This document shows positions 4,958-64,000 of a stretch of 64,000 bases of DNA, in pieces. Location of the stretch: the sequence record NC_019411.1; one strand, given 5' to 3'. The first letter of the stretch is position 1, and each line of letters starts with the position of its first letter. Under the pieces are notes generated by a model. The model worked only from the letters and a program-made list of their open reading frames with translations. It was not told where the DNA came from and did no database searches. The position numbers and the translations under genes were made by a program.

Positions 4958-4983
4958 CATGACAGAGCATGTCAGGAGGGACG

Positions 4984-8319: not shown

Positions 8320-8326
8320 GCTTGCA

Positions 8327-8506: not shown

Positions 8507-8527
8507 CTTCCCCTCGAATTTGGCGGC

Positions 8528-8556
8528 ACCCTAGAGGAGCGTTCGAGTGTTGACAA
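8528..8556 (-). promoter_or_regulatory. leftward promoter of gcrA operon
   Basis: TTGTCA-N17-TAGGGT on minus strand. Confidence 0.55.
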
Positions 8557-8582
8557 GCACCAATGTCGCTGGCTTTCGAGTG

Positions 8583-8641
8583 TTGACAAGTCCGGTGCTC
8601 GTCTATAGGGGAGACCGGGACGACAACGAAAGGAGCCTGCC
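8583..8641 (+). promoter_or_regulatory. cassette promoter
   Basis: TTGACA-N17-TAGGGG...GACGACAAC GAAAGGAG. Confidence 0.75.
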
Positions 8642-8950
8642 ATGCGCTATGTGCTCGACTATGCCGACGACCGGGACAAGCCGGTCTACACCGATTTCCA
8701 GGCCGGCGACCGCAAGGCGGCCATCGCCAAGGCCAAGCGCCTGCTCGCCAAGGCGATCAAGACCGTCGATTTCTCGCTCCACGGGGCCTACATCTTCGTC
8801 GATCCGACGGGCGTCGCCCGCGACGTCGACGACATGATCCCGTTCGGGATGCTGAGCACGATGGCCTACGCCAGCATCGTCACCCCGTCGATGATCTCGT
8901 TCGACGACCGCGACGCCAAGGCCGCGATCGCCACGAGGCTCGCCCAATGA
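8642..8950 (+). CDS. hypothetical protein
   Basis: first gene after promoter, RBS present. Confidence 0.75.
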   Translation: MRYVLDYADDRDKPVYTDFQAGDRKAAIAKAKRLLAKAIKTVDFSLHGAYIFVDPTGVARDVDDMIPFGMLSTMAYASIVTPSMISFDDRDAKAAIATRLAQ

Positions 8951-9159
8951 TGGATCGTCAGGACGTCCAGCCCGGCTTCATCTATCGCGGCGGCAAGAAC
9001 GGAACCCTGCGTCAGATCGTGAGCTATGGGGCGACCGAGGATTTCGTCTGCTGGGCCAATCCCCACGACCGCCTGCCCTACGGCGGCTTCATCTCCACCA
9101 TCTGCACGTCCAGGACGTCGTTCGCCCGCTGGGCCGACAAGATCGAGGAAGAGGTCTGA
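8947..9159 (+). CDS. hypothetical protein
   Basis: overlap-coupled ORF. Confidence 0.65.
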   Translation: MMDRQDVQPGFIYRGGKNGTLRQIVSYGATEDFVCWANPHDRLPYGGFISTICTSRTSFARWADKIEEEV

Positions 9160-9431
9160 TGAACACCTTCTTCCTCCGGCAGACCAAGCGGGACGAGCAG
9201 GGTCGACGCTACTTCGAGTTCGTCGATCCTGACCTGACCCAGCGCCTCTATGTCCGCAAGCCGCCGGACGAATGGTCCGAGGGCTTCCCGATCGTCCTGG
9301 AGGACTTCGTCAATGGCAAGCCCGCCGGCTCCATCATCTGCCCGGCCGGAAAGAAGCGGGGCCACGGCTTCGCGGCCTTCTTCAAGGCCAACCCCAAGGA
9401 TTTCCGCAAGCTCAAGAAAGGCCGCCTATGA
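9159..9431 (+). CDS. hypothetical protein
   Basis: TGATG coupling. Confidence 0.65.
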   Translation: MNTFFLRQTKRDEQGRRYFEFVDPDLTQRLYVRKPPDEWSEGFPIVLEDFVNGKPAGSIICPAGKKRGHGFAAFFKANPKDFRKLKKGRL

Positions 9432-9694
9432 GGATTCCCCAGCCCGTCGAATTCACCGTGGCCGACCTCATCGCCCACCTTGCGACCCTTCCCCAGGACG
9501 CCAAGGTTGGCGTGCGTGGCGGGTTCGGGGGCTTCCGGCCGCTCGACGAGATCGCCCCGATCGAACTCGTCACCCTCTATGGCGAGGACGAGACTGACCG
9601 GCTGACCCTGGCGACCGCCGATCCCATCGCCCAGAAGTGGATGGCCCAGGAGTCCCGCGCTGGCGAGCCCTTCACCGCCATCATTCTCGACTAG
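9428..9694 (+). CDS. hypothetical protein
   Basis: ATGA coupling; start MRIPQP. Confidence 0.65.
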   Translation: MRIPQPVEFTVADLIAHLATLPQDAKVGVRGGFGGFRPLDEIAPIELVTLYGEDETDRLTLATADPIAQKWMAQESRAGEPFTAIILD

Positions 9695-9702
9695 GAGGAC
9701 CC

Positions 9703-9942
9703 ATGACGAACCGTGTCTGGATTGAACTCGAACCGTCCGCGACCGAGGGGCACGCCCGCGCCGCCGCCGCGTCGGCCATGCTGAAGCGCCTGGGTGTCGA
9801 CGTCGGCGTCCACAAGCCGGTGTTCTGGCACGAGCGCAATGAGCGCTACTGCTTCACGCTCGACGCCTCGGGCGTCTACGTCGAGGCCGACGACCACGGC
9901 CACTGGTACAACCTCGATTTCCTGGCGGGCGCCGATGTCTGA
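9703..9942 (+). CDS. hypothetical protein
   Basis: AGGAGG RBS. Confidence 0.7.
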   Translation: MTNRVWIELEPSATEGHARAAAASAMLKRLGVDVGVHKPVFWHERNERYCFTLDASGVYVEADDHGHWYNLDFLAGADV

Positions 9943-10330
9943 GGTCTTCCCGCCGATCCGCCCCCGCGAGGCCAGGGACGAGGAAATCCACGGCTTCGTC
10001 GTCCGCTACGGCTGGTTCTGGAACGTGACCCTGCTGAACGGCACGATCCTGGCCTTCGATCCCGACGATGTCGACCCCTGCCGCTACGGCGTGACGGGCA
10101 AGGACGACTTTCGCAACCTCGCCGGCGCGCCTGAGACGATCGCGGCCTACGAGTGCGTCCAGGGCTGGCACGCCAAGGCCAAGCACCTCTCGGGCTGGAC
10201 CGAACGTCACGACGACCGGCTCGAAGCCCTGCGGACGGCTTATCGCCGCCTGGAGGAGCAGCGCGAGCGCAACAGCCGCGCCCTGGAGGAGCACGGCGGC
10301 ATCTTCAAGTTTCTGGAAGGTCAGGACTGA
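9935..10330 (+). CDS. hypothetical protein
   Basis: packed ORF; start MSEVFP. Confidence 0.65.
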   Translation: MSEVFPPIRPREARDEEIHGFVVRYGWFWNVTLLNGTILAFDPDDVDPCRYGVTGKDDFRNLAGAPETIAAYECVQGWHAKAKHLSGWTERHDDRLEALRTAYRRLEEQRERNSRALEEHGGIFKFLEGQD

Positions 10331-52075: not shown

Positions 52076-54808
52076 GTGAGCTACTATCCGATCGAGGACC
52101 GCGCCAAGGCCCGGTCCGTCGTCAAGAACCTGCTGGACCTTCAGCGCGAGGCGGTCAAGGCCTCGCGCGGCGGCCTGATCCTGCCGCCCGACCAGAAGGC
52201 GATCATCACCCAGGTCACCGAGACCGAGGACCCGGCCCGCTGGGTCGACCTTCTGGGCCAGTTCGCCGATCGCGTCCAGACCGATCACCTCGCCCGGCTG
52301 AAGCCCCTGGCCAAGCACGACTTCAACGCCTTCTGCGAATACGTCAATCCCGAGGAGGCCCCGGCCTCCAAGTGGCACGTCTACCTGACCTCGCTCCTCC
52401 AGGAGATCGAGAACAACCACGAGCTTGAGCGCTTCGTGCTCAACTGCCCGCCCGGTCACGCCAAGCCGCTCGACGTCGACACCGAGGTCCTGATGGCCGA
52501 CGGGTCCTGGAAGCGCCTGGGCGACATCACCGTGGGCGAATACGTGGTCGGCGAGAGCGGCGCGCGCTGCAAGGTCACCGCCGTCCACGAGCAGGGGGAG
52601 CTTGCCACCCTGAAGATCACCACCGCCCACGGCCGCCAGATCATCGCCGCCCCCGATCACGCCTTCCGGGTCGGCAACACCTGGAAGGAGGCGGGCAAGC
52701 TGCGGCCGGGGGATGCGCTGTCCGTGGTCGGCGCCGCCAACCTCAACTACGACGCCAGCGGCAAGACCATCGACCACTTCGAGCTTGCCGCCTACCTCCA
52801 GGCCAAGGGCGGACGCTCCTACTTCCACCGCGTCCACAAGAGCGGGCCGAAGACCTACCGCAACGTCTTCCTGTGGACCTCCGACCACCGCGAGGCCAGC
52901 AAGATCAGCGCCTGCCTCAAGCGCCTGGGGATCGCCTTCAAGGGGCGCCTCGCCAAGCACGAGCAGGTCTGGAAGATGCGTCTGGCCACCGAATGGGGCG
53001 ACGCCCTGGCCGAGGAGTACGGCCTGGACGCGCGGATCGACGCGCGCCGGGTTCCGGCCTTTGTCACGAAAGGCGACGAGGAGCAGATCGCCCGCTACCT
53101 GTCGACCTACGCCTCCCTGGCCGGCGAGGCGCCCGACCGCTACACCATCCCGCGCATCATCCTCTACTTCAAGAACCCGGCCTTCGCCCGCGACATCCAG
53201 CGCCTGTTCGCCGTGGTCGGCGTCAACGCCCGCATCGAGGGGCGCAAGACCGGCCGCACCCGGCTGATCCTGTCGGGGCCGGACCTGGAGGCCTACTTCG
53301 CCGCCGGCCTGACCTACACCGGCCCCAACGCCGACAAGCTCGACGACAAGCGCGCGGCCTTCCCGACCTCGCCCTCGCTCCTGGCCGACACCGTCACCTG
53401 GATCGAGCCGCACGGCGTGCGCCCCTGCCGCTGCCTGACCGTCGAGGACGAGCACACCTTCATCGCCGAAGGCGTGGTGGTCCACAACTCGACCTACGCC
53501 TCGCGCCTGTTCGTGGCGTGGCGCCTGGGGCGCGATCCGCGCCAGAAGATCATCGGCGGCGGTCACTCCCAGCGCTTCGTCGAGAACGAGTTCTCCGGCA
53601 AGATTCGCAACCTCGTGCGCACCCCGCAATATCGCGACGTCTTCCCCGACGTGGTCATCGACCACGCCACCTCGGCCAAGGACATGTGGGCGATCGCCGG
53701 GCACGGTGGGCAGTACGCCGCCAAGGGCGCCGGGCAGGCCATCCACGGTCTGCGCGCCCACTTCGTCTGCGTCGACGACCCCTACCGGTCGATCGAAGTG
53801 GCCGAGTCCGCGATCGAGCGCGAGAAGATCAAGACGTGGTTCTTCGGCGACGTTGGCTCGCGTTTGTTGCCGCTCGCCAAAGTATTCCTCATCATGACGC
53901 GCTTCCATGAGGAAGATTTGACCGGGGAGATCATCAAACTCAACCAAGAAGTTCTCACCGGCGCCGACCGTTATCACATCGTTGAAGCGCCCGCCCTGTG
54001 CTACGACCCCGAGAACGACGTCCTGGGCCGGGCTCTGGGCGAAGTTTTGTGGGACTACTATGACTTGCATTATTTCAAGCGCAAGCGGTCCGAGTGGAAG
54101 TACCAAAGATTTGCTTTGGTTTATCAACAACTTGCCGACGCGGCCTCGGACACCTCCATCGCGTCCAAGTTTCAGACCTACGATCACCTGCCCCACCTGG
54201 AGCCGAAGGTGCTCAAGGCCCGGCTTGACGCGGGTCACGCCGACGAGCGCGGGCGGCCGATTCCGGACCGCAAGGAGCACTTCCGGCGGGTGGTGGTCAG
54301 CGTCGACTCGGCCAACAAGCCCGGCGCCCGCAACGACTACAGCGTCGCCCAGGTCTGGGGGGAGACCCACGCCCGCAAGCACTACCTGATCTACCAGGAG
54401 CGCAAGAAGGTCGACATCACCGGCCTGACCGAGATGATCGAGCGGGTGGCCAAGCGCTACGAGGTCGACGCCATCCTGGTCGAAGACAAGGGCAACGGCA
54501 CCGCCTACATCCAGGCTCGGGGCCAGACCGACAGCCAGCGGCGGCTCGCCCCGGCCCCGATCGAGGCGATCCAGGTCCCGAGCACCTATTCCAAGGAGTT
54601 CCGCTTCAACGAGATCGTCCCGATGATCGAGGCCGGCGAGGTCTTCCTGCCGGGCAAGGCCCCGTGGCTCGACCTGCTGATCCGCGAAATCGGTCAGTTC
54701 CCCGAAGGCGCCCATGACGACCAAGTCGACGCCATGACGCAGTACCTCCGCTGGGCCAAGTCCAAGCGCACGCGGTTCGGCGCGCGCAAGGTCGGCTCGA
54801 TGGGCTGA
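52076..54808 (+). CDS. terL: terminase large subunit, intein-interrupted
   Basis: Walker A PPGHAK/ST split by intein; Walker B FVCVDDP; nuclease SVDSA...HDDQVDA. Confidence 0.92.
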   Translation: MSYYPIEDRAKARSVVKNLLDLQREAVKASRGGLILPPDQKAIITQVTETEDPARWVDLLGQFADRVQTDHLARLKPLAKHDFNAFCEYVNPEEAPASKWHVYLTSLLQEIENNHELERFVLNCPPGHAKPLDVDTEVLMADGSWKRLGDITVGEYVVGESGARCKVTAVHEQGELATLKITTAHGRQIIAAPDHAFRVGNTWKEAGKLRPGDALSVVGAANLNYDASGKTIDHFELAAYLQAKGGRSYFHRVHKSGPKTYRNVFLWTSDHREASKISACLKRLGIAFKGRLAKHEQVWKMRLATEWGDALAEEYGLDARIDARRVPAFVTKGDEEQIARYLSTYASLAGEAPDRYTIPRIILYFKNPAFARDIQRLFAVVGVNARIEGRKTGRTRLILSGPDLEAYFAAGLTYTGPNADKLDDKRAAFPTSPSLLADTVTWIEPHGVRPCRCLTVEDEHTFIAEGVVVHNSTYASRLFVAWRLGRDPRQKIIGGGHSQRFVENEFSGKIRNLVRTPQYRDVFPDVVIDHATSAKDMWAIAGHGGQYAAKGAGQAIHGLRAHFVCVDDPYRSIEVAESAIEREKIKTWFFGDVGSRLLPLAKVFLIMTRFHEEDLTGEIIKLNQEVLTGADRYHIVEAPALCYDPENDVLGRALGEVLWDYYDLHYFKRKRSEWKYQRFALVYQQLADAASDTSIASKFQTYDHLPHLEPKVLKARLDAGHADERGRPIPDRKEHFRRVVVSVDSANKPGARNDYSVAQVWGETHARKHYLIYQERKKVDITGLTEMIERVAKRYEVDAILVEDKGNGTAYIQARGQTDSQRRLAPAPIEAIQVPSTYSKEFRFNEIVPMIEAGEVFLPGKAPWLDLLIREIGQFPEGAHDDQVDAMTQYLRWAKSKRTRFGARKVGSMG
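52466..53488 (+). mobile_element. 341-aa intein with degenerate LAGLIDADG domain
   Basis: PLDVDTEVLMADG start; block B AAPDH; block F CRCLTVED; end VVHN followed by Ser. Confidence 0.88.
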
Positions 54809-54811
54809 CGA

Positions 54812-54880
54812 GGCCCGTTAACCACGTTTGTTAACCTCCGCCGGGGCCTTAACCCTAACACGGCGAGGGTTAACAGGTCC
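54812..54880. repeat. TTAAC-rich element, near copy of 56040-56064
   Basis: GGCCCGTTAACCACGTTTGTTAACC (1 mismatch to 56040 copy). Confidence 0.8.
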
Positions 54881-55034
54881 AGGGACCCTTCGAAATTAAC
54901 CTTTCGGGGACCCTGGGAAATCGACAGACGGGGACCCTGGCCATTTTCCGGCTGGGGACCCTGCCAAATTCATCGCCGGGGACCCTCCGAAATTCATCTC
55001 TGGGGACCCTGGCGAATTCAGAGCCGGGGACCCT
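54881..55034. repeat. 24-bp-period GGGGACCCT array
   Basis: cores at 54906, 54930, 54954, 54978, 55002, 55026 plus AGGGACCCT at 54881. Confidence 0.9.
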
Positions 55035-55054
55035 GGCGAATCATGGAGCCGACG

Positions 55055-55246
55055 ATGGCCGGATTTCTCAACCTGATCCCGAACCTCGCGCCGTTCGCGC
55101 TTTGGGGCGTCCTCCTCTGGATCGCCGCCGAGGTGGTCTGGAGCGTCTGCCTCTGGGTCTACGGCCTGCGGACCCTGTTCAAGCTGCACCGCGACGATCT
55201 GGCCGAGGCGATCAGCTTCGAGCGGGCCTTGAGCCCCTTCGACTAG
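55055..55246 (+). CDS. small membrane protein
   Basis: GGAG RBS; hydrophobic segment. Confidence 0.5.
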   Translation: MAGFLNLIPNLAPFALWGVLLWIAAEVVWSVCLWVYGLRTLFKLHRDDLAEAISFERALSPFD

Positions 55247-55329
55247 GCGCGGCCTGCCGACCTAAGTCACGGACTGTAGGTTTCATGACAAGGTGGATTA
55301 TTCCACAACGAAATCAAAGGCTTATCGCC

Positions 55330-55578
55330 ATGTCGATCCGCGCGTTCCTCCACGATCTGGCTGTCCGCTTCGTCGTTTTGGGGTGGATTTTTGCTCAAAA
55401 ACCCCAGAAATGGGCTCCAAAAGGGCATAATTTTCAGCCCATCCCGCCGGCCCAGGTCGAGCGGCAGGACCTCCGGGGGCGCGTGCTACTCCTGAGGAGC
55501 TTCGGCGTCCTCGCCGCCGCATGCACAACCATGGGCCTGTGTCAATACCTGCTCTGGCGCCGCGCGGCCATGTCATAG
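55330..55578 (+). CDS. possible small membrane protein
   Basis: two hydrophobic segments; atypical codons. Confidence 0.3.
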   Translation: MSIRAFLHDLAVRFVVLGWIFAQKPQKWAPKGHNFQPIPPAQVERQDLRGRVLLLRSFGVLAAACTTMGLCQYLLWRRAAMS

Positions 55579-55722
55579 ACTAGGGCTTTCGTGACAGCTT
55601 CACGATCCCGTTACCGGACAACCCCATGCCTCACCTGGGTTTCTGGCTCTCCGCCGCCTGCATCGCTCTGGCCTGGGCGATCTGGGCGCTGCGGCGGCTG
55701 ATCGGCCCACCACCGCCCACCT

Positions 55723-55756
55723 GATACCGGCGGCGCGAGCCCGCGCCGCCGGTATC
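55723..55756. other. 15-bp perfect hairpin
   Basis: GATACCGGCGGCGCG-AGCC-CGCGCCGCCGGTATC. Confidence 0.7.
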
Positions 55757-55858
55757 GCCCGGCCAAAGCATCATATATGAGCCCTTAACCCCTCTAAGGT
55801 CTCATATATGCGACCTTACGGCCCTCTTGACGCCCTCGTGTTCCTCTGAACGCGGGGG

Positions 55859-55960
55859 CGTTTTGACGTCGGCGCATTTCCAACTCAACGCGCGGCCGTT
55901 TTGACGTCCGAGCGTTTTGACGCGAGCGCATTTTCGATTCGACGGGCGAGCGTTTTGACG
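55859..55960. repeat. CGTTTTGACG x4 (54-bp tandem duplication)
   Basis: copies at 55859, 55897, 55913, 55951. Confidence 0.85.
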
Positions 55961-56004
55961 TCCGAACGTTTTTCAACTTGACGTCGTTTCATTTACCACG
56001 AGCG

Positions 56005-56220
56005 CCTTAAGGTTAACCGCCGAGCCTGGGAAGGGTTAAGGCCCGTTAACCATGTTTGTTAACCCTCAGGCCGTTAACCCATCGCCCGTTAAGGTTAACG
56101 CACCCGCCCCCATTAACCCTTAGCGTGTTAAGGTTAACGCCCCGCCCGCCAACGTTAGGGTTAACAGGCCGTTAAGGTTAACAAACATGGTTAACGGGCC
56201 AGACCGGCGTTAACCCTAAC
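56005..56220. repeat. dense GTTAAC/TTAAGG array with 25-bp perfect inverted repeat
   Basis: GGCCCGTTAACCATGTTTGTTAACC 56040-56064 and its reverse complement 56176-56200. Confidence 0.9.
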
Positions 56221-56304
56221 GGCCGGCGCCCAGGCGTTCGCCGGCGAGCCCAGGCCCAGGCCCTACCGGGTATGACCTGCCGGCCATACCCGGTAGGGCG
56301 CGCC

Positions 56305-56562
56305 TCACGCGTCCGCGTCGGGCGACGCCGCCGCGCCGTATTCGTGGTCATTCCAGAGTATGCCCAGAATTTCGTCAGGCCCGAACGAAGGCAACAGGGT
56401 TTGCAGGGCGTCGTATGTCTCGCGAAAGGCGCTCGCGTCGTCGTCTTGCATCCAAACCGACTCCTTGCCGGCCTTGTCGCGGAACGTGTACGCCGCGCCG
56501 TTCCCGTAGCTGTCGAGGGCGAAGCGTTCGCCCTCCGAAATGCGTAGCGGTCCTGAGTACAT
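56305..56562 (-). CDS. hypothetical protein (divergent early gene)
   Basis: TTGGAG RBS, ATG 56562; CtrA-like box upstream. Confidence 0.6.
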   Translation of the reverse strand: MYSGPLRISEGERFALDSYGNGAAYTFRDKAGKESVWMQDDDASAFRETYDALQTLLPSFGPDEILGILWNDHEYGAAASPDADA

Positions 56563-56618
56563 GGGGCGATCTCCAAGGGCGCGGGGTGCGCCGACCCGTG
56601 CAATCTGACAGCCAATTC

Positions 56619-56634
56619 TTAACAAAAGGTTACC
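56619..56634 (-). promoter_or_regulatory. CtrA-like box, leftward
   Basis: minus strand GTAA-CCTTTTG-TTAAG. Confidence 0.6.
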
Positions 56635-56652
56635 GTGAGATTTTTCTTGCCG

Positions 56653-56685
56653 TTTACTTTTTGTTAAGAATTGGGGTCTAGTGTC
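56653..56685 (+). promoter_or_regulatory. CtrA-box promoter
   Basis: TTTA-N7-TTAAG; CTAGTGTC 14 nt after second half-site. Confidence 0.7.
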
Positions 56686-56734
56686 CTCCTTGTCGGGGCC
56701 AGCCCCGGCGCTCTTTGACATTGTGAGGCAATCC

Positions 56735-56923
56735 ATGATTCCCCAAGAAATCCTGAATCCGCGCGAGCACTGGACTCCCGTCGCCTCGCGCGAGGAAGCC
56801 GACAAGATCGCCGCGCGCTGCACCGAAGGCGACCCCGTCGGCCGCTACTATGTCGAGCCCAAGGGCGCCGGCTACGCTGTCGCCTATGACGACGAGGCGG
56901 GCGAATTCGTCGCCTACCTTTAA
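56735..56923 (+). CDS. hypothetical protein
   Basis: GAGG RBS; start MIPQEI. Confidence 0.7.
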   Translation: MIPQEILNPREHWTPVASREEADKIAARCTEGDPVGRYYVEPKGAGYAVAYDDEAGEFVAYL

Positions 56924-56950
56924 CCTTTTGTTAAGACCTGACCTCTAAAC
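56920..56950 (+). promoter_or_regulatory. CtrA-box promoter
   Basis: perfect TTAA-CCTTTTG-TTAA; CTAAAC. Confidence 0.8.
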
Positions 56951-56984
56951 AGGGGTCAGGTTCAACCCCTGGAGGCCCTGCCCC

Positions 56985-57524
56985 ATGTCCGTTATCGAAA
57001 CCGCCAACCTCTCGCGCGGCCGTGTTCTCACGGTCGAAATCGACGACTGCGCTCAAGAGCCCTACGCCGACGACAAGGGCGTGCGAATCGTCGTCCTGCA
57101 TCGCCATTGGGCGAACCCCGCCGCCGGCCTGCTGGACACCGTCGAGGACGTTCAAGCCTTCGAGGCGCAGAACGCCGCGCCCGACTCCGCATGGGCGATC
57201 TTTGAGCTATGGGTGATGGACCATAGCGGCCGGACCTTCAAGGCCGGCGCGCTGGGCGCCGGAAACCCGTTCGGCGCCGGACCCTACGCGCAATGGGATA
57301 GCGGCCGGGTCGGAGTCATCGCCCTGGCGCGCGCCGAGTGGCCCGCCGCCGACCTCAAGACCGCCCAAGGCGTCGCCGACACCTACGGCGCATGGGCCGA
57401 AGGCGAGGTTTACCAATTCGTCATTTCGAACCGCCGGGGCGACGTGCTCGACTCGTGCGGCGGGTTCTACAGCGTCGCCGAAGCCCTGGCCGCCGGCCGC
57501 GACGCCGCCAAGGTGAAGGCGTGA
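56985..57524 (+). CDS. hypothetical protein
   Basis: GGAGG RBS; WDSGRVG, WAEGEVY, DSCGGFY blocks. Confidence 0.75.
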   Translation: MSVIETANLSRGRVLTVEIDDCAQEPYADDKGVRIVVLHRHWANPAAGLLDTVEDVQAFEAQNAAPDSAWAIFELWVMDHSGRTFKAGALGAGNPFGAGPYAQWDSGRVGVIALARAEWPAADLKTAQGVADTYGAWAEGEVYQFVISNRRGDVLDSCGGFYSVAEALAAGRDAAKVKA

Positions 57525-57715
57525 GGGTCGCCCGCGAAAGCTTCGCCGTGTTCTGGACCCGCCCCGGCTGGCGCGTCCAGTTTCACGCCGACATGAAACG
57601 GGCGCTGTACCCGACCGCCAAGGCCGCCGCCGACGCCTTCGCCGCCATGTTCCCGGCTGATCAGGTCAAGAGCGTGCGCGACGGTTCCGGCCGCTTCCTG
57701 GCCTTCAAGCGCTAG
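57521..57715 (+). CDS. hypothetical protein
   Basis: GTGA coupling. Confidence 0.55.
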   Translation: MRVARESFAVFWTRPGWRVQFHADMKRALYPTAKAAADAFAAMFPADQVKSVRDGSGRFLAFKR

Positions 57716-57720
57716 ACCAG

Positions 57721-57756
57721 ACGCCCCGGAAAACTTTTCCGGGGCGTTTACTTTTT
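57721..57756 (+). terminator. intrinsic terminator overlapping CtrA box
   Basis: ACGCCCCGGAAAA/TTTTCCGGGGCGT then T-rich tract. Confidence 0.7.
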
Positions 57757-57780
57757 GTTAAGGAATGGCGTCTAGTGTCC
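57747..57780 (+). promoter_or_regulatory. CtrA-box promoter
   Basis: TTTA-CTTTTTG-TTAAG; CTAGTGTC. Confidence 0.7.
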
Positions 57781-57824
57781 CTCTTGCCGCCGGGCAATCC
57801 CGCCCGGCCTTGGAGTTCTTCCCC

Positions 57825-58343
57825 ATGCCGGAATTTGTCCTAGATACGTCGGGCCAAGTCGCCCCGCCCGCCGCCGCCAAGCTTTGGCCGCACCCCCTGG
57901 CCTGGAATCAGTTGAGCGATTTTGCTCAAGGCTATATCGAGGCCCTGTTTTTCACCGAGTCGTCGCCGGCCTATGACCGCGCCGAATGGTTCGGCGCCGA
58001 GTGTCAAGAGGCCCTGACCGAAGGCACGGCGGACGGCAACATTCCGGGCGATGTCGGTTTTTCCGACCTCGCGCCCGACACCCTCAACCGCATCTTGAAC
58101 GACTGCGCCAACTTCAAGCGCGAGCACGCCGACACCCTGGCCAAGGCCTATGACCACGGCGGCGCGGCGGGCGACTATGACGAAACCCAAGCCGGCCGCG
58201 ATTACTGGTACACCCGCAACGGCCATGGCGTCGGGTTTTGGGATCGCGGACTCGGCGAGATCGGCGAGGCCCTGAGCAAGGCCGCCCGCTACAGCGAGCA
58301 AAACGCCTCTTTCGAAGAGGACGGAAAAGTCTACCTGTTTTAA
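57825..58343 (+). CDS. hypothetical protein
   Basis: TTGGAG RBS; GRDYWYTRNGHGVGFWDRG block. Confidence 0.75.
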   Translation: MPEFVLDTSGQVAPPAAAKLWPHPLAWNQLSDFAQGYIEALFFTESSPAYDRAEWFGAECQEALTEGTADGNIPGDVGFSDLAPDTLNRILNDCANFKREHADTLAKAYDHGGAAGDYDETQAGRDYWYTRNGHGVGFWDRGLGEIGEALSKAARYSEQNASFEEDGKVYLF

Positions 58344-58372
58344 CCTTTTGTTAAGACTTGGCCTCTAGGGTC
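58340..58372 (+). promoter_or_regulatory. CtrA-box promoter
   Basis: perfect TTAA-CCTTTTG-TTAA; CTAGGGTC. Confidence 0.8.
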
Positions 58373-58435
58373 GAGTTGTCCCGGCGCCGGGGCTGGAAAC
58401 CCCGGCGCGTCCATTCCGTGAAAGGAATCCATACC

Positions 58436-59188
58436 GTGTCTTTTGGTCAATTCTCCGCCGACGCCCGCGCCCCGCTGTCGAAAGCCGCCATGCTGGACGC
58501 CCTCCCCGCCGCCCGCCGCGACGCTCTGGTCAAGTCCAGCAAGCCGGCGCGCAACACCCTCGATTACACGACGTCGGACGGCGTGCGCCGCGTGCGCCTG
58601 CATGACACCGACGTCCTGACCTTCCATGTCAACGGCGCCGTCGAGATCAACACGGGCGGCTGGAATACCCTCACCACGCGCGACCGCATCAACGCTTTCG
58701 CCCCGCCTCACGTGCGCGTCTACAGCGACAAGGGCCGCGCCGTGGTTCACGCCTTGCCGGCCGGCGCCAGCGCCGTCACGTGGTCCAGCCCCGCCGCGTC
58801 CAAGCCGTTCGCCAAGCGCGCCACCGTCCACCCGGACGGCCGAATCGAAGTGGACGCCACCGTCAAGGAACTGGAGGCGATTCCTAGCCTCATCCGCCGC
58901 TATCTGGAGGCCTTCAAGGCCGGTTTCCCGTTCAACTCGTCGGGCGACCCGTGGATGACGCCCGGCGCCCTCGTCGCCCCTGAAACGGCCCTGGATTGGC
59001 TGGGCGCCGACAGCGGCAAGCCGTACCTGTTCGACTCGATCCTGTTTCACGCCCATGTCGCGGCCGGCCTTACCGAAGAGGGCGCGGCCGGCTACATGCG
59101 CGACCTCTTCCGCCACCCGGCGCGGCTGGATAAGTTCCACCTCGGCCGCATCCGGCGTTATCTCAAGCGCTGCTTGCGCGACGCCTAA
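58436..59188 (+). CDS. hypothetical protein
   Basis: AAAGGA RBS, GTG start; LHDTDV...NTGGWNTLTTRDRIN. Confidence 0.7.
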   Translation: MSFGQFSADARAPLSKAAMLDALPAARRDALVKSSKPARNTLDYTTSDGVRRVRLHDTDVLTFHVNGAVEINTGGWNTLTTRDRINAFAPPHVRVYSDKGRAVVHALPAGASAVTWSSPAASKPFAKRATVHPDGRIEVDATVKELEAIPSLIRRYLEAFKAGFPFNSSGDPWMTPGALVAPETALDWLGADSGKPYLFDSILFHAHVAAGLTEEGAAGYMRDLFRHPARLDKFHLGRIRRYLKRCLRDA

Positions 59189-59195
59189 GACCCTC

Positions 59196-59229
59196 CGGCC
59201 GCGCCTCCCCTGGCGCGGCCGTTCTTTTT
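59196..59229 (+). terminator. intrinsic terminator
   Basis: CGGCCGCGCC/GGCGCGGCCG then TTCTTTTT. Confidence 0.8.
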
Positions 59230-59240
59230 CCGTGTACGCG

Positions 59241-59275
59241 TTAACTTGTTGTTAAGACTTTATCCGCTAGTGTCC
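59241..59275 (+). promoter_or_regulatory. CtrA-box promoter
   Basis: perfect TTAA-CTTGTTG-TTAA; GCTAGTGTC. Confidence 0.8.
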
Positions 59276-59318
59276 CTTTGCCGGCGCACTTCCGCGCCCT
59301 CACCTGGAGATTTTCCCC

Positions 59319-59939
59319 ATGGTCCGCCTGATCAAAGCCAAGACCGCCGCCGAACAAGCCGAAGCCCTCGCCAGCCTGCGCAAGATGATCAAGCCGGGCG
59401 ACACGGTTTATCCCGTGCTGCGCCACGTCTCGACCTCCGGCATGTTGCGGGTCATTGACCTGATTATCCCGGTCACCGTCACCCAAACCGACACCTTGCC
59501 GGCCGATGCGCGCGGCTTCAAGATCGGCGTTCAAGCCTATGCGACCCCGCCGGAACGCAACGCCCCCCGCGCCTTCTCAACCGGTACGGTTTCGGCTTTC
59601 GACGCCGACACCGTGACCATTACCTATCAGGCCACCGCCGACGGCCGGGGCGACGCGGAGTCGGTGACGTGGCCCCGTGGTCAGGTCAAGTTCTACCGCA
59701 AGAGCACGCGCCCCGGCGTCCGCTCGATCGGCTGGCTTGCCGCGAAGGCCATGGGCGACACTTTCGACGCCGACCGCCAAGGAATCAAGGTCGGCGGGTG
59801 CGGGATGGATATGGGCTTTCACCTCGTTTACAGCCTGGGCCGCACCTTGTGGCCGAAGGGGACGAAAAAGCCCCATGGCTCGCGCAATGGCGAGCCCGAC
59901 CGCGACGGCGGTTATGCGCTGAAACATTCCTGGCTTTAA
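59319..59939 (+). CDS. hypothetical protein
   Basis: GGAG RBS; LRHVSTSGM...GCGMDMGFHLVY blocks. Confidence 0.75.
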   Translation: MVRLIKAKTAAEQAEALASLRKMIKPGDTVYPVLRHVSTSGMLRVIDLIIPVTVTQTDTLPADARGFKIGVQAYATPPERNAPRAFSTGTVSAFDADTVTITYQATADGRGDAESVTWPRGQVKFYRKSTRPGVRSIGWLAAKAMGDTFDADRQGIKVGGCGMDMGFHLVYSLGRTLWPKGTKKPHGSRNGEPDRDGGYALKHSWL

Positions 59940-59970
59940 CTTTTTGTTAAGAGTTTAGCCGCTAATGTCT
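59936..59970 (+). promoter_or_regulatory. CtrA-box promoter
   Basis: perfect TTAA-CTTTTTG-TTAA; GCTAATGTC. Confidence 0.8.
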
Positions 59971-60017
59971 CCTTGCGGCCGGGCAATCCCGCCCGGCCGC
60001 ACTGGAAAGCCAAGCCC

Positions 60018-60290
60018 ATGACCCGCGCTCAAGCCCTCGCCGAAATGAACGCCCTCCCCGGTATCATCGCCTCTTTCGAGCGCGAGACGGGCGAATATCG
60101 CGTCACCCTGCGCTTTGGCCCCCTGCCGGGCGGCCGGGGCGCTCAAGAGTGGATGCACAAGCGCCGCGAAGCCGTCGCCAGCTACAGCGACGACAAGGCC
60201 GACGCCCTGGCCACCGCCCGCGACATGTCGGCCCGTTGGGAAGCCATGACGCCCGCGCAACGTGATCACCTGTACCGCCACCCCGCGTAA
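60018..60290 (+). CDS. hypothetical protein
   Basis: start MTRAQA. Confidence 0.7.
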   Translation: MTRAQALAEMNALPGIIASFERETGEYRVTLRFGPLPGGRGAQEWMHKRREAVASYSDDKADALATARDMSARWEAMTPAQRDHLYRHPA

Positions 60291-60320
60291 CCCTTCCTTA
60301 AGACCTCGCCGCCTAGGGTG
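60287..60320 (+). promoter_or_regulatory. CtrA-box promoter
   Basis: GTAA-CCCTTCC-TTAAG; CTAGGGT. Confidence 0.65.
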
Positions 60321-60354
60321 GCGGGGTCATCAACCCCCGCAAGGATCGCCCGAC

Positions 60355-60633
60355 ATGCGCAAGCCCCTCACCCAAGAGCAAAAGGCCCGCCGCCGCGCCC
60401 AACGCCGCGCCGCCCGCCTCGCCTGGAGCGACGAACGCCGCGCGGCCGAATACGCCCGCCAATCGCGCTTTTTCCTGATGATCGCCGAACGCGCCCAAGC
60501 GGCGGGCGACGCCAAGGAAGCCGCCCGCCTCGCCACCGTCGCCCAACGCAAGGTCACTAACTGGCGCATGGCGCAAGCCTGCGCTCGAATCAACGCCCTG
60601 GCGGTTCACGCCTGGGCTTCCGTCGCCGCCTAA
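60355..60633 (+). CDS. basic Arg/Ala-rich hypothetical protein
   Basis: AAGGA RBS; start MRKPLT. Confidence 0.65.
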   Translation: MRKPLTQEQKARRRAQRRAARLAWSDERRAAEYARQSRFFLMIAERAQAAGDAKEAARLATVAQRKVTNWRMAQACARINALAVHAWASVAA

Positions 60634-60645
60634 GGAGCCGCAACC

Positions 60646-60969
60646 ATGCCCCCGATGACTCACCCTCACGCCCTGGCCTTGATCGCGCTCGCCGAAAAGG
60701 TCTTGCCCCTGACCCGGCTGGACCCGCTGGACCAGCGCGCCGCCGCTGTCGACCTGATCGGCGATCTTTACAGCCTCGCCGACTCCATCGACGCCACCGC
60801 CGGCCACTTGGTCGAGGCCGTCAACGGCGCCTTGCGCGACGGCTGCGAGGGTTACGCGCCCAAGAGCCGCGCCGCCGCCGCTGTCGCCACCGTCCGCGCC
60901 GACGAACTGCGCTCCGCCCTGGAAGCGTACACCGAAGCCGCCGCCCTGGCCCTGCCGAAGGTCGCCTAA
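60646..60969 (+). CDS. hypothetical protein
   Basis: AAGGAG RBS. Confidence 0.7.
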   Translation: MPPMTHPHALALIALAEKVLPLTRLDPLDQRAAAVDLIGDLYSLADSIDATAGHLVEAVNGALRDGCEGYAPKSRAAAAVATVRADELRSALEAYTEAAALALPKVA

Positions 60970-60972
60970 GCC

Positions 60973-61641
60973 ATGTCGCAACGCTACCGCCTCGCGCCCT
61001 CCGCCCGCGTCTCCAAGACGCTTTCGGACCTGCTTTATGCGGCGTCGGAAGTCGTCGCCACGGCGGCGCAATATGAGACGACGCCCGCCGGTCAAACCAA
61101 GCTCGCCAAGATGCGCGGCGACCTGATCACCGAAAGCGCCGGCGCCCTTGTGCGCAAGCCGCCTAGCGCCGTCCTCGCAACCCTCGTTTGGGTTGTCGAA
61201 CTGGCGCAAGCCCGCGCCACGGAAAACGACTTCGGCAACGCTCAAGAGGCGCTGGACGAACACGACGCCTTAGCGTTCGTCGCCGATTGGCTGGAAGCCG
61301 AAGGCGTGGACGTGAGCGACATTCGCGGCGCCGCGCCCTCCGCCGAAGCCTTGGCCGAACTGGTCGCCCGTCGCGACGCCGAACAAGAGGCGCTGGACGC
61401 CCTAGAGCGCCCCGTTCCCCTCATCGCGTCGGATAAGGCCTATGCGCTTGCCGAAGTCTTCGGCGGGCTGATCCCGGCCGCCCTGGCGCTGGGCTATGAA
61501 TTCCACGTCAGGCCCGACGGGCTCGCCCCGCCGCACTACGTCAGCCGCAACGGCGTTCCCGTCGCCGCGTACTACGCCGACAAGGAAGCGCTCGCGCTGG
61601 ACACCCTCGCCATTCACATTGACCAAGCCAAGGAAGCCTAG
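60973..61641 (+). CDS. hypothetical protein
   Basis: packed ORF. Confidence 0.7.
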   Translation: MSQRYRLAPSARVSKTLSDLLYAASEVVATAAQYETTPAGQTKLAKMRGDLITESAGALVRKPPSAVLATLVWVVELAQARATENDFGNAQEALDEHDALAFVADWLEAEGVDVSDIRGAAPSAEALAELVARRDAEQEALDALERPVPLIASDKAYALAEVFGGLIPAALALGYEFHVRPDGLAPPHYVSRNGVPVAAYYADKEALALDTLAIHIDQAKEA

Positions 61642-61644
61642 ACC

Positions 61645-62355
61645 ATGACCGCCCCCGCCCTGACCCGCGCCGCCGCCCTCGAAGCCCTGGAAATCGCCCG
61701 CGCCAACCTCGCCGCCGGTCCTGCCCTGGCCAAGGCCGCCGACGGCGTGACGAATGTGTGTCACTTCGCCCTGACCCGCGCCGCCATGCTCAAGGCCGCC
61801 AACATGATCGCCGCCGCCGCCCCGGCGCTGGACCTGGGCGCCGTCTCGACGGCTGATCTTATCGCCGAACTCTACCGCCGCCCCGTGGCGCTTTGCGTGT
61901 TCGAAGCCGCCGACGTGTTGAGCGAGGCGCCCGGCGCTTTCGACGACGCCGACGACGCGGGCCAATGGCTGGCGAGCAAGTCCAGCTATATCGGCGACGC
62001 GATGAGCGGCGCCGGCTGGGACTCGGTGCGCTATCACCTGACCGCCGACGGCCGGGCGACCGATGACGACGAGGAAGCCGACGACGAGGGCGACGCCCTC
62101 CCCGTCGCCGTGACCTTGGAGCAAGGCGACGCGGTCCCCGTGGTCGGGCGCTTCGCTACCGTGGCGGAGGCTGAAACCTTCCTGGCGTCGCCGATCCGTG
62201 ATCAAGCCGCCCTGGAGGCCGGCCGCTACGGTATCGACGCGCCGCACGGCGTGGCCAGCGACGACGACGCCGTGACCCTGGCGCGGCGCCTGGGCTGGGC
62301 TGGCGTGGCGAACGCGGCCGAAGCCTTGCGCTTCCTGGCCAAAATCGAGCCTTAA
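61645..62355 (+). CDS. Ala-rich hypothetical protein
   Basis: AAGGA RBS. Confidence 0.7.
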   Translation: MTAPALTRAAALEALEIARANLAAGPALAKAADGVTNVCHFALTRAAMLKAANMIAAAAPALDLGAVSTADLIAELYRRPVALCVFEAADVLSEAPGAFDDADDAGQWLASKSSYIGDAMSGAGWDSVRYHLTADGRATDDDEEADDEGDALPVAVTLEQGDAVPVVGRFATVAEAETFLASPIRDQAALEAGRYGIDAPHGVASDDDAVTLARRLGWAGVANAAEALRFLAKIEP

Positions 62356-62546
62356 GCCCGCCTAAGTCATCAAACCGACCGTCTATGACTTGTCACCGGC
62401 CGAACTCTTGCCCGGTGACAGTCTGGGCAAGTAAAGCTCACTCTTGATTTTATGACTTAGCGCAAAAGATTGAAATTGCTCGAAAAATTCCTCGAAGCTC
62501 ACAAAGTCGTTTTCTGGCTGCTTTTGCTGGCCTGTTTGTGGCGCTT

Positions 62547-62580
62547 TTAACGGTTTGTTAACCCCTGGCCCTCTAGGGTC
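62547..62580 (+). promoter_or_regulatory. CtrA-box promoter
   Basis: perfect TTAA-CGGTTTG-TTAAC; CTAGGGTC. Confidence 0.85.
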
Positions 62581-62633
62581 GAATTCCCGGCGCGGCAATC
62601 CCGCCGCCCGGCCTTCCTTCGGAGCTTCTGATC

Positions 62634-63080
62634 ATGTTCGCTTCCGTGACCCTCCCCGCCCATGACGCCCAAGGCCTGAGCCTCGAAACCGTCCACATGG
62701 TTTTCGCCCGTGAACTGGCGCAACACTTCGACCACGTGATTTCCGCCCCCGTGGTCGAAAGCTGGACCGACGAGGACACCGGCGCCGTGCAAGAGCAAGC
62801 CGCCGTCTGCTTCACCGTTTCGGCGACCCCGGCCGCGTGGGAAGCCAAGGGCGGGCGCCTCGCGCGCCGGCTGGAAAACCTCGCCGCGCGCTATGCCGCC
62901 GACTGCGACGCCCCGGCCCTGACCGTCACCCACTGCGACGGCTCGACGGTCTATGTCGGCGCTCTGGAAGCCCTGGCGCGCCCCGCCCCGGTGCAAGGCC
63001 CGACCCGCGACGCGGACCCGGCTTTCCTCCCCCGCCAGCGCGAGGACAAGGCCGCCCGCTTCGATCGCCTGACCGCCTAG
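62634..63080 (+). CDS. hypothetical protein
   Basis: GGAG RBS behind CtrA promoter. Confidence 0.7.
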   Translation: MFASVTLPAHDAQGLSLETVHMVFARELAQHFDHVISAPVVESWTDEDTGAVQEQAAVCFTVSATPAAWEAKGGRLARRLENLAARYAADCDAPALTVTHCDGSTVYVGALEALARPAPVQGPTRDADPAFLPRQREDKAARFDRLTA

Positions 63081-63097
63081 CCCCTGGCCTTCCCCCT

Positions 63098-63132
63098 AGC
63101 GCACCGCCCCTAGAAAGGCGGTGCGCTTTTCT
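63098..63132 (+). terminator. intrinsic terminator
   Basis: AGCGCACCGCC/GGCGGTGCGCT then TTTCT. Confidence 0.75.
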
Positions 63133-63139
63133 GTGTCTG

Positions 63140-63174
63140 TTTACTTGTTGTTAAGGAATAGCCTGCTAGTGTCC
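63140..63174 (+). promoter_or_regulatory. CtrA-box promoter
   Basis: TTTA-CTTGTTG-TTAAG; GCTAGTGTC. Confidence 0.7.
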
Positions 63175-63223
63175 CCTTGTCGGCGGACGCATCCCGCGCC
63201 CGCCCCTTTCTGGATCGCTCCCC

Positions 63224-63616
63224 ATGGCTCGCCCCTCTGACCTGCTCAACGTCAACGCCGCCCGCGTCCTGGCTTGCCTTGAGCCTATCGCCGCCGCCGC
63301 TAAGACCGCCCCGGCCGCCGACCGCGCCGCCCTTTCCTACCTGCTCGACGCTGGCGAGTATGTCGCCGCGTGGCGCCGCAACCTCACGGAAACCGACCGC
63401 CGCAAGGCCTATGGCGCGGCCTGCGCCGCCGAAGCCCTGGCGCTCGCTAACGCCTATCAGCCCGCCACCCTGCAAGGCGGCGCCGTCCGCCGCGCGCTGG
63501 GCGCCTATGCCGCCGCCCTGAAGGTCCTGCTAGACGGGGAGCCGGTCAAGGCGGTGCGCGCCGCCGAAGGCGCGGCGCTTTCGGTCCGCGCTCGCTACGC
63601 CAACACCCGCCTTTAA
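63224..63616 (+). CDS. Ala-rich hypothetical protein
   Basis: behind CtrA promoter. Confidence 0.7.
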   Translation: MARPSDLLNVNAARVLACLEPIAAAAKTAPAADRAALSYLLDAGEYVAAWRRNLTETDRRKAYGAACAAEALALANAYQPATLQGGAVRRALGAYAAALKVLLDGEPVKAVRAAEGAALSVRARYANTRL

Positions 63617-63645
63617 CCTCTTGTTAACACCCCCCGGCTATGGTC
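63613..63645 (+). promoter_or_regulatory. CtrA-box promoter
   Basis: perfect TTAA-CCTCTTG-TTAAC; GCTATGGTC. Confidence 0.85.
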
Positions 63646-63670
63646 GGGGGGTCGCAAGGAGACACCCGAC

Positions 63671-63865
63671 ATGACCCGCCCCGGCCCCGCCTCGCTCCTG
63701 ACCCCGCAAGCCCGCTTCTCGTCGCCGCGCGTCCTGATCCTTCCGGGCGCGGCTCCCATGCCGATTCGCCAGCCGCGCGGCCTTTGCGCCGTCGAGTGCG
63801 TCGCCCTTGGCGTGACGCTGGGCGCGGCGCTCTACCTCGCCGCCCGCGTGTTCGGTCTGGTCTGA
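63671..63865 (+). CDS. small protein with C-terminal TM segment
   Basis: AAGGAG RBS; hydrophobic C-terminus. Confidence 0.6.
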   Translation: MTRPGPASLLTPQARFSSPRVLILPGAAPMPIRQPRGLCAVECVALGVTLGAALYLAARVFGLV

Positions 63866-64000
63866 CCAGACCCCCGCCCGCCCCCGGTCGGACCGGTCGG
63901 GGGTGTGTCCCATAATGACACACCCCCCGCCACCTAGTATCTTTTTTGATTCGGAGGGACCCAAAGGCCCCCTACGTTAACCATTTTTGGCGGCGCCCCC

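Follow-up and report, generated by a model that had tools for sequence, protein, structure and literature searches.

The right terminal repeat of CcrSwift and its CtrA boxes

The DNA analysed here (the window) is a stretch of 64,000 nucleotides from record NC_019411.1 and covers the final 64 kb of Caulobacter phage CcrSwift (100% identity to JX100809.1). The whole record measures 219,216 bp and comprises ~199 kb of unique genome and two copies of a direct terminal repeat (DTR). In JX100809.1 the repeat is annotated as repeat_region 1-9971, with record positions 1971-9971 matched at 100% identity, and a left-DTR record position is converted to a window position by adding 54029. The gene-bearing part of the DTR holds 15 small, function-less genes in about six short transcription units. 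None of the 15 DTR proteins matched a Pfam family above threshold, the sole match being a sub-threshold one of gp009 to Kyano_Gp96. Likewise, an Rfam search gave no match near gathering scores, and a scan with the GcrA-like protein of the phage gave no Caulobacter locus. The features of the region are as follows.

54030-64000, no strand: right DTR, 9,971 bp, by exact string match to record 1-9971
56619-56633, minus strand: leftward CtrA box GTAACCTTTTGTTAA for gp004 (56562 down to 56305)
56653-56684, plus strand: box TTTACTTTTTGTTAA with -10 CTAGTGT (56678-56684), predicted promoter of gp005 (ATG 56735); leader hairpin 56692-56709
56920-56962, plus strand: perfect box, predicted promoter of gp006-gp007 (ATG 56985)
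57719-57749, plus strand: intrinsic terminator 3' of gp007, from the terminator scan and also annotated in the record
57747-57808, plus strand: box TTTACTTTTTGTTAA with -10 CTAGTGT (57772-57778), predicted promoter of gp008; leader hairpin 57789-57808, loop AATCCC
58340-58408, plus strand: perfect box overlapping the gp008 stop, predicted promoter of gp009 (probable GTG 58436); strong leader hairpin 58384-58408
59196-59221, plus strand: intrinsic terminator 3' of gp009, from the terminator scan
59241-59298, plus strand: perfect box with -10 CTAGTGT (59267-59273), predicted promoter of gp010 (ATG 59319); leader hairpin 59283-59298
59936-60001, plus strand: perfect box overlapping the gp010 stop, -10 CTAATGT (59962-59968), predicted promoter of gp011 (ATG 60018); 11-bp leader hairpin 59974-60001, loop AATCCC
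60287-60328, plus strand: degenerate box GTAACCCTTCCTTAA overlapping the gp011 stop, 5' of gp012-gp015 (60355-62355)
62547-62611, plus strand: perfect box TTAACGGTTTGTTAAC with -10 CTAGGGT (62573-62579), predicted promoter of gp016 (ATG 62634); leader hairpin 62587-62611
63098-63127, plus strand: intrinsic terminator 3' of gp016, from the terminator scan
63140-63204, plus strand: box TTTACTTGTTGTTAA with -10 CTAGTGT (63166-63172), predicted promoter of gp017 (ATG 63224); leader hairpin 63182-63204, loop ATCCC
63613-63653, plus strand: perfect box overlapping the gp017 stop, predicted promoter of gp018 (SD AAGGAG, ATG 63671)

The T tail of the gp007 terminator extends into the next CtrA box (57747). 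Five boxes overlap the upstream gene, in its stop codon only; at 56920, the TAA stop of gp005 lies inside the first half-site.

Perfect TTAA-N7-TTAA boxes number seven in the window against 0.00 expected (0 of 100 shuffles), and boxes with at most one mismatch number 12 against 0.77 expected (largest shuffle, 3). These 12 boxes, 7 perfect and 5 with one mismatch, all lie within 56161-63627, and the rest of the 64-kb window is free of perfect and one-mismatch boxes; an earlier note on this DNA had noticed no canonical N7 box in 0-48 kb. In a whole-record scan, the ~199 kb of unique genome contained no perfect box (reversed-pattern control, 0), and the 219-kb record has 14 perfect boxes, every one of them inside a DTR copy. 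The box pattern that the earlier note described is real: its six perfect boxes (56920, 58340, 59241, 59936, 62547 and 63613) were all recovered, as were, in the scan allowing one mismatch, those at 56653, 57747, 60287 and 63140, together with the leftward box at 56619, which reads GTAACCTTTTGTTAA on the minus strand. The seventh perfect box, missing from that list, is at 56161, within a GTTAAC array and without a -10 downstream; 16 TTAA half-sites without a promoter form an array at 56007-56213, directly upstream of the cassettes. The GACGACAAC cassettes, said to be absent from this region, number 11 in the window against 0.63 expected; they lie between 536 and 37746, and none is in the DTR.

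A shared expression cassette and its hairpins

The boxes belong to an expression cassette of ~90 nt that is common to nearly every gene or gene pair of the region. The cassette box follows the pattern T[T/A][A/T]AC-N6-GTTAA, the -10 reads (C)TAnnGT, and downstream of it come CCCTTG, a GC-rich stem-loop near the predicted mRNA 5' end, a GGAG or GGAT ribosome-binding site and the start codon. CTA(G/A/T)nGT begins 10-11 nt after the box end in 10 of 10 rightward boxes and is followed by a Shine-Dalgarno sequence and start codon; the distance of 14-15 nt given earlier for CTA(G/A/T) holds when counted from the start of the second half-site. For every cassette box, the start codon lies 26-64 nt further on, measured from the -10. 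Since the -10 sits 10-11 nt downstream, the box centre would fall near -31, the usual place of the -35 hexamer; both this position and the -10 assignment are predictions from spacing. A sigma-70-type scan found no -35/-10 promoter for the DTR cassette genes. The leftward cassette at 56619 lacks the CTA -10 and has a non-canonical, CAGATT-like one, and its gp004 leader 3' of the box carries a GGCGC-ACCCC-GCGCC hairpin, GGAG and ATG.

Two start codons in the DTR are likely misannotated. For gp008, the start consistent with the cassette is ATG 57825, and the annotated start at 57765 falls within the predicted promoter.

The same cassette is found in 8 other phiCbK-like phages, in 57 unique copies when the count is anchored on GTTAA plus the -10, and the distal half-site among these copies is TTAAC in 23, TTTAC in 21 and GTAAC in 10. 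The box at 60287 is degenerate in Swift (GTAAC-CCTTCC-TTAA), with the full consensus in the phage BL57 orthologue. Conservation extends beyond the known needs of CtrA to a T-rich spacer ending in TTG and a GA after the box; shared ancestry or a second factor may account for this.

In four cassettes the -10 is enclosed by a plus-strand RNA hairpin, and in three of these the hairpin is well supported, with compensatory changes that keep the stems. The -10 CTAAACA (56945-56951) lies in the loop of hairpin 56935-56962, CTAGGGT (60313-60319) in that of hairpin 60302-60328, and CTATGGT (63638-63644) lies in the loop of hairpin 63628-63653; all three hairpins covary. At 58340, the -10 CTAGGGT (58365-58371) is within a weak hairpin (58355-58377). 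These structures were considered as ordinary intrinsic terminators and rejected as such, since they have no T run, in contrast to all three real terminators of the DTR. Such DNA might have a dual use, ending or stabilising the upstream message and also starting the next one.

The leader hairpins, judged from per-sequence folds, are modestly more stable than random DTR sequence (mean -18.3 kcal/mol versus -13.7, sd 5.3, for 48-nt windows drawn at random from these DTRs). RNAalifold found no consensus structure for 27 mixed leader hairpins because differing stem lengths shift the register. Four RNA-seq runs from one study contain the DTR of a relative (share 0.10), as Logan contigs of 5-26 kb compared with window positions 58001-64000 (6,000 letters); these contigs revealed no transcription start, strand or timing. 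A contig start common to them, 8 nt 5' of a leader hairpin, was considered as a transcription start and rejected: its distance to the end of a cassette duplicated in phiCbK is exactly 30 nt (k-1), so it is read as an assembly break.

CtrA dependence and the timing of firing

As the earlier note stated, CtrA sites of this phage group have been published, and that report covers CcrSwift itself, with 21 predicted sites, an LPEG (skewed) distribution and a normalised entropy of 0.553, and includes it in a DTR alignment (Mascolo et al. 2022, PMC9437464). In terms of the LPEG criteria, the CcrSwift sites are concentrated in the DTR and upstream of genes. Promoter DNA of phiCbK gp005 and gp018 is shifted by CtrA~P in EMSA, and box mutations abolish the shift; the corresponding lacZ fusions show strong activity in uninfected cells, which drops >29-fold and 5-fold, respectively, in a ctrA-ts strain, a collapse seen at permissive temperature (PMC9437464). 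The proposal of host-CtrA-dependent promoters is thus supported by these phiCbK orthologues; CtrA-independent activity had been named as the contrary outcome, and in the published work on phiCbK activity fell in the ctrA-ts strain. Moreover, the Swift cassette at 62547 (gp016) is identical over 72 nt to the orthologous phiCbK gp018 promoter.

It is highly probable that the Swift cassettes are CtrA-activated promoters, in which the CtrA box would replace the -35 element, and we infer that all 10 or 11 of them would behave like the tested phiCbK pair. Phosphorylated host CtrA would bind the box and recruit host RNA polymerase, as at host -35-box promoters, and no phage factor should be needed for firing: the phiCbK cassettes are active and ctrA-dependent in uninfected cells, which argues that a phage protein is unnecessary and the effect positive. 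The DTR would be on the first DNA to enter the host cell with either end in front, since it is present at both.

The conserved sequence outside the TTAA half-sites, the array at 56007-56213 with its 16 half-sites and no promoters, and the published repression by CtrA of the tested promoter of Brevundimonas phage Delta would fit boxes that are mainly non-activating, whether they draw CtrA~P off the host origin as a sink, bring about repression or bind a phage-encoded protein whose supposed target is the extended motif TTGTTAAGA. Such a role is very improbable in view of the fixed spacing from box to -10 to start codon in every cassette and of the ctrA-allele-dependent, strong activity of the phiCbK cassettes without infection (PMC9437464). 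It is harder still to believe that the repeats are one cassette copied by recombination (module shuffling), with an incidental match to the CtrA consensus. Cassettes identical over >60 nt do occur within one genome (phiCbK 3980 and 5178), and cassette gain and loss among relatives has been reported, but diverged copies keep their half-site positions and -10 while flanks and hairpin stems vary, the binding of CtrA is specific, as seen in EMSA with box mutants (PMC9437464), and the same skew arose in unrelated phages of CtrA-bearing hosts (published).

As for when CtrA-activated cassettes would fire, the proposal of the earlier note, taken as first-injected genes firing at once in swarmers, is in conflict with a published model of lytic deferment, put forward by the experimenters themselves, Mascolo et al. 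(PMC9437464). That model keeps the same CtrA-activated promoters silent in infected swarmers, as host late-S promoters are, and has them fire only upon CtrA re-synthesis in the predivisional cell, so that the lytic programme awaits the host cycle. This would agree with most single -35-box host promoters, which peak in early to mid predivisional cells (PMC11264516), and with SciP, which turns off late-S CtrA promoters in G1 (published). However, in ctrA401 at 30 C late-S promoters are up (PfliQ 241%) and the G1 promoters pilA, sciP and hfsJ are poorly active (Delaby 2019, PMC6847485), whereas the phage fusions drop >29-fold and 5-fold. Their collapse at permissive temperature would be a G1-class signature and favours immediate firing over deferment. 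This argument draws on two papers, each from a different laboratory, and presupposes that LS2195 is a ctrA401 strain, as we take it to be, both papers citing Quon 1996. In addition, phage mRNA makes up 14% of all transcripts already by 15 min post-infection, a whole-phage total for the infected culture without per-gene breakdown, and Mascolo et al. make no mention of Delaby et al., of MucR or of the G1 class.

Deferment therefore appears rather unlikely, and the cassettes are, on balance, probably G1 (swarmer)-class CtrA promoters that fire once the DNA enters a swarmer cell; such firing would be immediate-early because the phage infects only cells with CtrA in G1 mode. The joint reading, which adds to G1-class immediate-early firing within minutes the dual-use -10 hairpins in four cassettes, is put forward tentatively. 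The earlier note also placed the TTGACA/GACGACAAC class after the DTR cassettes. These promoters have a consensus TTGACA -35, so no activator should be needed, and the sequence holds nothing that would make this class later.

Meaning and comparison with known systems

That a lytic phage puts a whole gene block under a host developmental regulator is a point already in the literature, and CtrA also builds the pilus and flagellum required for phage entry. If the G1-class reading is true, the programme would be keyed to the infectable cell state rather than being a deferment switch, the published lytic-deferment model would need revision, and the block would provide a swarmer-specific phage with its host-takeover set. 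New here are the ~90-nt shared cassette, the covarying hairpin with the -10 in its loop and the two likely misannotated starts.

Among the closest known systems are the phiCbK gp005 and gp018 promoters and the CtrA-site-rich DTRs of phiCbK-like phages, which share phage group, DTR location, box and cassette with CcrSwift and show no essential difference; the published study tested phiCbK promoters only and describes neither the -10 spacing nor a shared leader, hairpins or a G1-class reading (PMC9437464). Host fliQ, fliL, ctrA P2 and pilA site 1 have a single TTAA-N7-TTAA at -35 and are CtrA~P-dependent. CtrA-induced host promoters mostly have one near-consensus box at -35, and in fliQ and fliL the box is at -35 with a degenerate distal half-site (PMC11264516). 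Host -35-box promoters keep the promoter-proximal half-site while the distal one is often degenerate, as in the phage cassettes. Host CtrA promoters are single and heterogeneous, whereas the phage copies, ten of them within 7 kb, have a T-rich spacer, a fixed leader and a ribosome-binding site in common.

The pre-early region of coliphage T5 is likewise in a long (roughly 10-kb), non-permuted direct terminal repeat, with small genes of unassigned function behind strong promoters, "early" being presumed for CcrSwift. In T5 the pre-early genes are read from ordinary host sigma-70 promoters, which are not known to be wired to a host regulator. Two-step DNA transfer, in which the repeat goes in first and its products let the rest follow, is a feature of T5. 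The comparison with T5 was made, and the DTR termini determined, by Gill et al. (2012).

In Bacillus, the lytic phage phi29 likewise reads a host master developmental regulator, Spo0A, at early promoters (published); there Spo0A represses and suspends the lytic cycle, whereas CtrA activates the phiCbK cassettes. A dense TTAA-N7-TTAA cluster has also been published for a pilus-dependent phage of a Caulobacterales host, in which a single intergenic gap of 1.3 kb holds the sites and the effect of CtrA on the tested promoter is negative. CcrSwift differs from that phage in having one box per promoter and, most probably, a positive effect of CtrA.

CtrA boxes in the terminal repeat

By string comparison, positions 54030-64000 of the window equal positions 1-9971 of the record of Caulobacter phage CcrSwift (JX100809.1), so that the window is the record's final 64 kb and the CtrA boxes belong to its right-hand direct terminal repeat (DTR). 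The annotation of JX100809.1 gives a 9,971-bp terminal repeat with both copies identical, which includes window 56000-64000, and this stretch is 100% identical to JX100809.1 1971-9971. Gill et al. (2012) had determined the termini in this phage group. Searching the whole 64-kb window for the CtrA box, TTAA-N7-TTAA, gave seven perfect copies vs 0.00 in dinucleotide-preserving shuffles, and 12 with at most one mismatch vs 0.77, all 12 at 56161-63627. The 219,216-bp record holds 14 perfect boxes, seven per DTR copy and zero elsewhere, while a reversed-pattern control across the same record returned zero matches. Likewise, 41 of the window's 50 TTAA copies fall at 54001-64000, with nine in the ~54 kb outside the DTR. 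The clustering of boxes is confirmed as real and is far beyond chance. The pattern scan found all coordinates right for the 11 boxes that an earlier note, made from the sequence alone, had placed at 56619-63645; the boxes it listed as perfect are so, but it omitted a further perfect box at 56161.

This clustering has a published precedent. Predicted CtrA sites cluster in the DTRs of phiCbK-like phages, as reported in a study whose DTR alignment comprises Ccr29, phiCbK, Rogue, and Swift, and whose supplement gives CcrSwift 21 predicted sites, a normalised positional entropy of 0.553, and class LPEG (Mascolo et al. 2022, PMC9437464). Upstream DNA of phiCbK gp005 and gp018 is shifted by phosphorylated CtrA, and the shift is lost with box mutations (PMC9437464). 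Hence published work on this phage group already contained the core reading of the earlier note, host CtrA control of this region, and the test it proposed. In Swift, the gp016 promoter cassette at 62547 corresponds to that of phiCbK gp018, the two being identical over a stretch that runs from 10 nt ahead of the box to 47 nt past it. That the Swift cassettes are wired to host CtrA is well supported by published work that includes CcrSwift, and for that reason it counts as already known; we found no later literature going beyond Mascolo et al. (2022). More broadly, window 56000-64000 matches 34 phage records, 31 of them Caulobacter phages, and each of the eight DTRs compared (phiCbK, Rogue, Karma, Ccr29, CcrBL10, BL57, RBC8, and Ccr2) has multiple copies of the CtrA-box cassette. 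The 15 DTR proteins (gp004-gp018) gave zero Pfam families above threshold, in agreement with the literature (Mascolo et al. 2022, PMC9437464).

Cassette anatomy and hairpins around the -10

Every rightward cassette runs from the box through CTAnnGT and a GGAG/GGAT-type ribosome-binding site to a start codon that lies 26-64 nt past the -10. CTAnnGT begins 10-11 nt past the box in each of them, which bears out the -10-like element of the earlier note. Taking (C)TAnnGT as the -10 would place the box at about -38 to -24, where most host CtrA-induced promoters have their single box (PMC11264516). A sigma-70-type scan found zero -35/-10 pairs for gp004-gp018, which fits promoters with an activator substituting for the -35. 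The leftward box at 56619 (gp004) is followed by a leader hairpin, GGAG, and ATG of the same kind, with a non-canonical -10; box 60287, before gp012-gp015, is degenerate in Swift, and its BL57 orthologue has full consensus. Together, gp004-gp018 are arranged as short units delimited by three canonical intrinsic terminators:

57719-57749: intrinsic terminator
59196-59221: intrinsic terminator
63098-63127: intrinsic terminator

The first half-site holds the upstream TAA stop in five cases (gp005, gp008, gp010, gp011, and gp017). Stop codon and CtrA site share bases at 56921, 58341, 59937, 60288, and 63614. For gp008, the start in the annotation (57765) falls within the promoter, 4 nt past the CtrA box, and the in-frame start consistent with the cassette is ATG 57825; for gp009, the cassette favours GTG 58436 (Shine-Dalgarno AAGGA upstream, in agreement with the BL57 annotation) over ATG 58490. 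RNA-seq contigs from a relative span the DTR and are uninformative on start sites, strand, and timing; a contig start shared among them was rejected as a transcription start, being a k-1 repeat artefact. After the -10 come CCCTTG and, 5-12 nt downstream of the -10 and near the predicted mRNA 5' end, a GC-rich stem-loop:

56692-56709, 57789-57808, 58384-58408, 59283-59298, 59974-60001, 62587-62611, 63182-63204: leader stem-loops

Nine phages supply 73 unique cassettes; in 29 of these the stem-loop has the loop AATCCC and in 8 it has ATCCC, and the stems comprise at least six unrelated sequences. RNAalifold over the mixed leader hairpins gave no result because of register shifts, and Rfam returned nothing. 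The leader stem-loop may stabilise the 5' end, or serve as a protein-binding or antitermination site.

In four stop-overlapping cassettes (56920, 58340, 60287, and 63613), a hairpin lies directly after the box and holds CTAnnGT in its loop:

56935-56962, 58355-58377, 60302-60328, 63628-63653: hairpins enclosing the -10

Their predicted folding energies are -11 to -22 kcal/mol, that at 58340 being the weakest. Ten hairpins orthologous or paralogous to those of gp012 and gp018 were aligned: 98.2% of cells pair, both sides have changed in 5 of 11 pairs (16 cells), and the covariation score was reached by none of 500 shuffles; sliding one arm reduced pairing to at most 52.7%. The gp006-family alignment, with five rows and weak alone, pairs in 100% of cells and has two doubly changed pairs. 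Across phages, three of the four hairpin families have the support of compensatory changes and of G-U pairs that can form on the + strand only, and 58355-58377 (cassette 58340) is predicted from folding only. One of the G-U pairs is invariant, and their restriction to the + strand means that the hairpin should act in + sense RNA or + single-stranded DNA, and its RNA form can exist only in read-through transcripts from upstream. Unlike the DTR's true terminators, these hairpins have no T run. At a guess, they may stabilise the 3' end of the upstream message or partly stop it, superimposed on an internal promoter. The hairpins are new, in that published work on these promoters does not describe them.

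A second promoter class and other elements

A second cassette type consists of GTGTTGACAA (-35), ~17 nt, a (C)TATAG/ATAGAA -10, GACGACAAC, GAGGAGG, and ATG:

8619-37746, + strand: ten GACGACAAC sites within this cassette type

The window has 11 copies of GACGACAAC (0.63 expected) and the DTR none; the earlier note had remarked on its absence at 56619-63645. This cassette is a consensus housekeeping-type promoter (TTGACA -35, TAnAnA-type -10) with a fixed leader and no CtrA box, and its consensus elements mean that host polymerase should recognise it unaided. The same note's second tier, in which the GACGACAAC class follows the CtrA-driven genes, finds no support in the sequence, the -35 and -10 being consensus; only DNA-entry order or a phage factor could make this class fire later.

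Four further elements stand out in the window:

56007-56213: half-site array, 16 TTAA in 207 bp, mainly GTTAAC or GTTAAGGTTAAC
55830-55990: iteron-like GCGTTTTGACG, five copies
62356-62546: intergenic 191 nt before the gp016 promoter, GC below surroundings
7771-8319, - strand: GcrA-like cell-cycle regulator gene (Pfam PF07750, 88.5 bits, E 7.5e-26)

Besides perfect N7 box 56161, the array has a perfect inverted repeat of 25 nt (56040-56064/56176-56200) containing TTAACCAT; no -10 or start codon follows its half-sites, box 56161 included, and its Ccr2 counterpart consists of full N7 boxes repeated in tandem with a 17-bp unit. Possible roles are an origin-like element or a titration element, bound by CtrA in either case. 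A ~40-nt block ahead of the GCGTTTTGACG copies is invariant in 8/8 aligned phages and, with the GCGTTTTGACG stretch, is better conserved than any other noncoding part of the DTR; this stretch and the adjoining array resemble an origin in layout. The intergenic region is conserved in the relative with RNA-seq contigs, and it folds more stably than shuffles (z = -2.65, 1/200). A structured 3' UTR or a small RNA is conceivable. A GcrA-like gene has been reported for phiCbK-like phages (Gill et al. 2012), and the relatives found in genomes, at 30-37% identity over the gene, are all from Alphaproteobacteria and none from Caulobacter.

Timing of expression and likeness to known systems

Reading two papers together, we lean towards the timing of the earlier note, in which these genes are switched on immediately in the swarmer cell, over lytic deferment, in which the promoters stay silent there until the predivisional cell makes CtrA anew. 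Deferment, which we hold doubtful, has to accommodate the collapse of the phage fusions in a ctrA-ts background at permissive temperature, which is G1-class behaviour. This argument depends on LS2195 carrying ctrA401, as we assume; both papers cite Quon 1996. The G1 class is that of CtrA promoters such as pilA, sciP, hfsJ, and flaF, which in ctrA401 at 30 C have low activity and are poorly bound (PMC6847485). CtrA function is not lost across the board in this condition (Delaby et al. 2019, PMC6847485): late-S CtrA promoters go up (PfliQ 241%) because SciP is not made (PMC6847485). Deferment is the model put forward by Mascolo et al. (2022, PMC9437464), who are silent on the G1 class, MucR, and Delaby et al. 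(2019). Since both genome ends carry the DTR, it is probably on the first DNA to enter. Phage RNA, all genes taken together, makes up 14% of all transcripts in an infected culture by 15 min. Three things add to the published work: the anatomy of the cassette, the hairpins with the -10 in the loop, and the argument for the G1 class.

As to known systems, the phiCbK-like terminal repeat has been compared with that of coliphage T5 (Gill et al. 2012). In a cassette collection anchored on the proximal GTTAA and the -10, both therefore fixed by construction, the distal half-site among 57 unique cassettes is TTAAC in 23, TTTAC in 21, and GTAAC in 10, and the box-to-(-10) gap is 10 or 11 nt. Host fliQ and fliL have an intact proximal half-site and a degenerate distal one (PMC11264516), and the phage cassettes resemble them in that they, too, keep the proximal half-site and vary the distal one.
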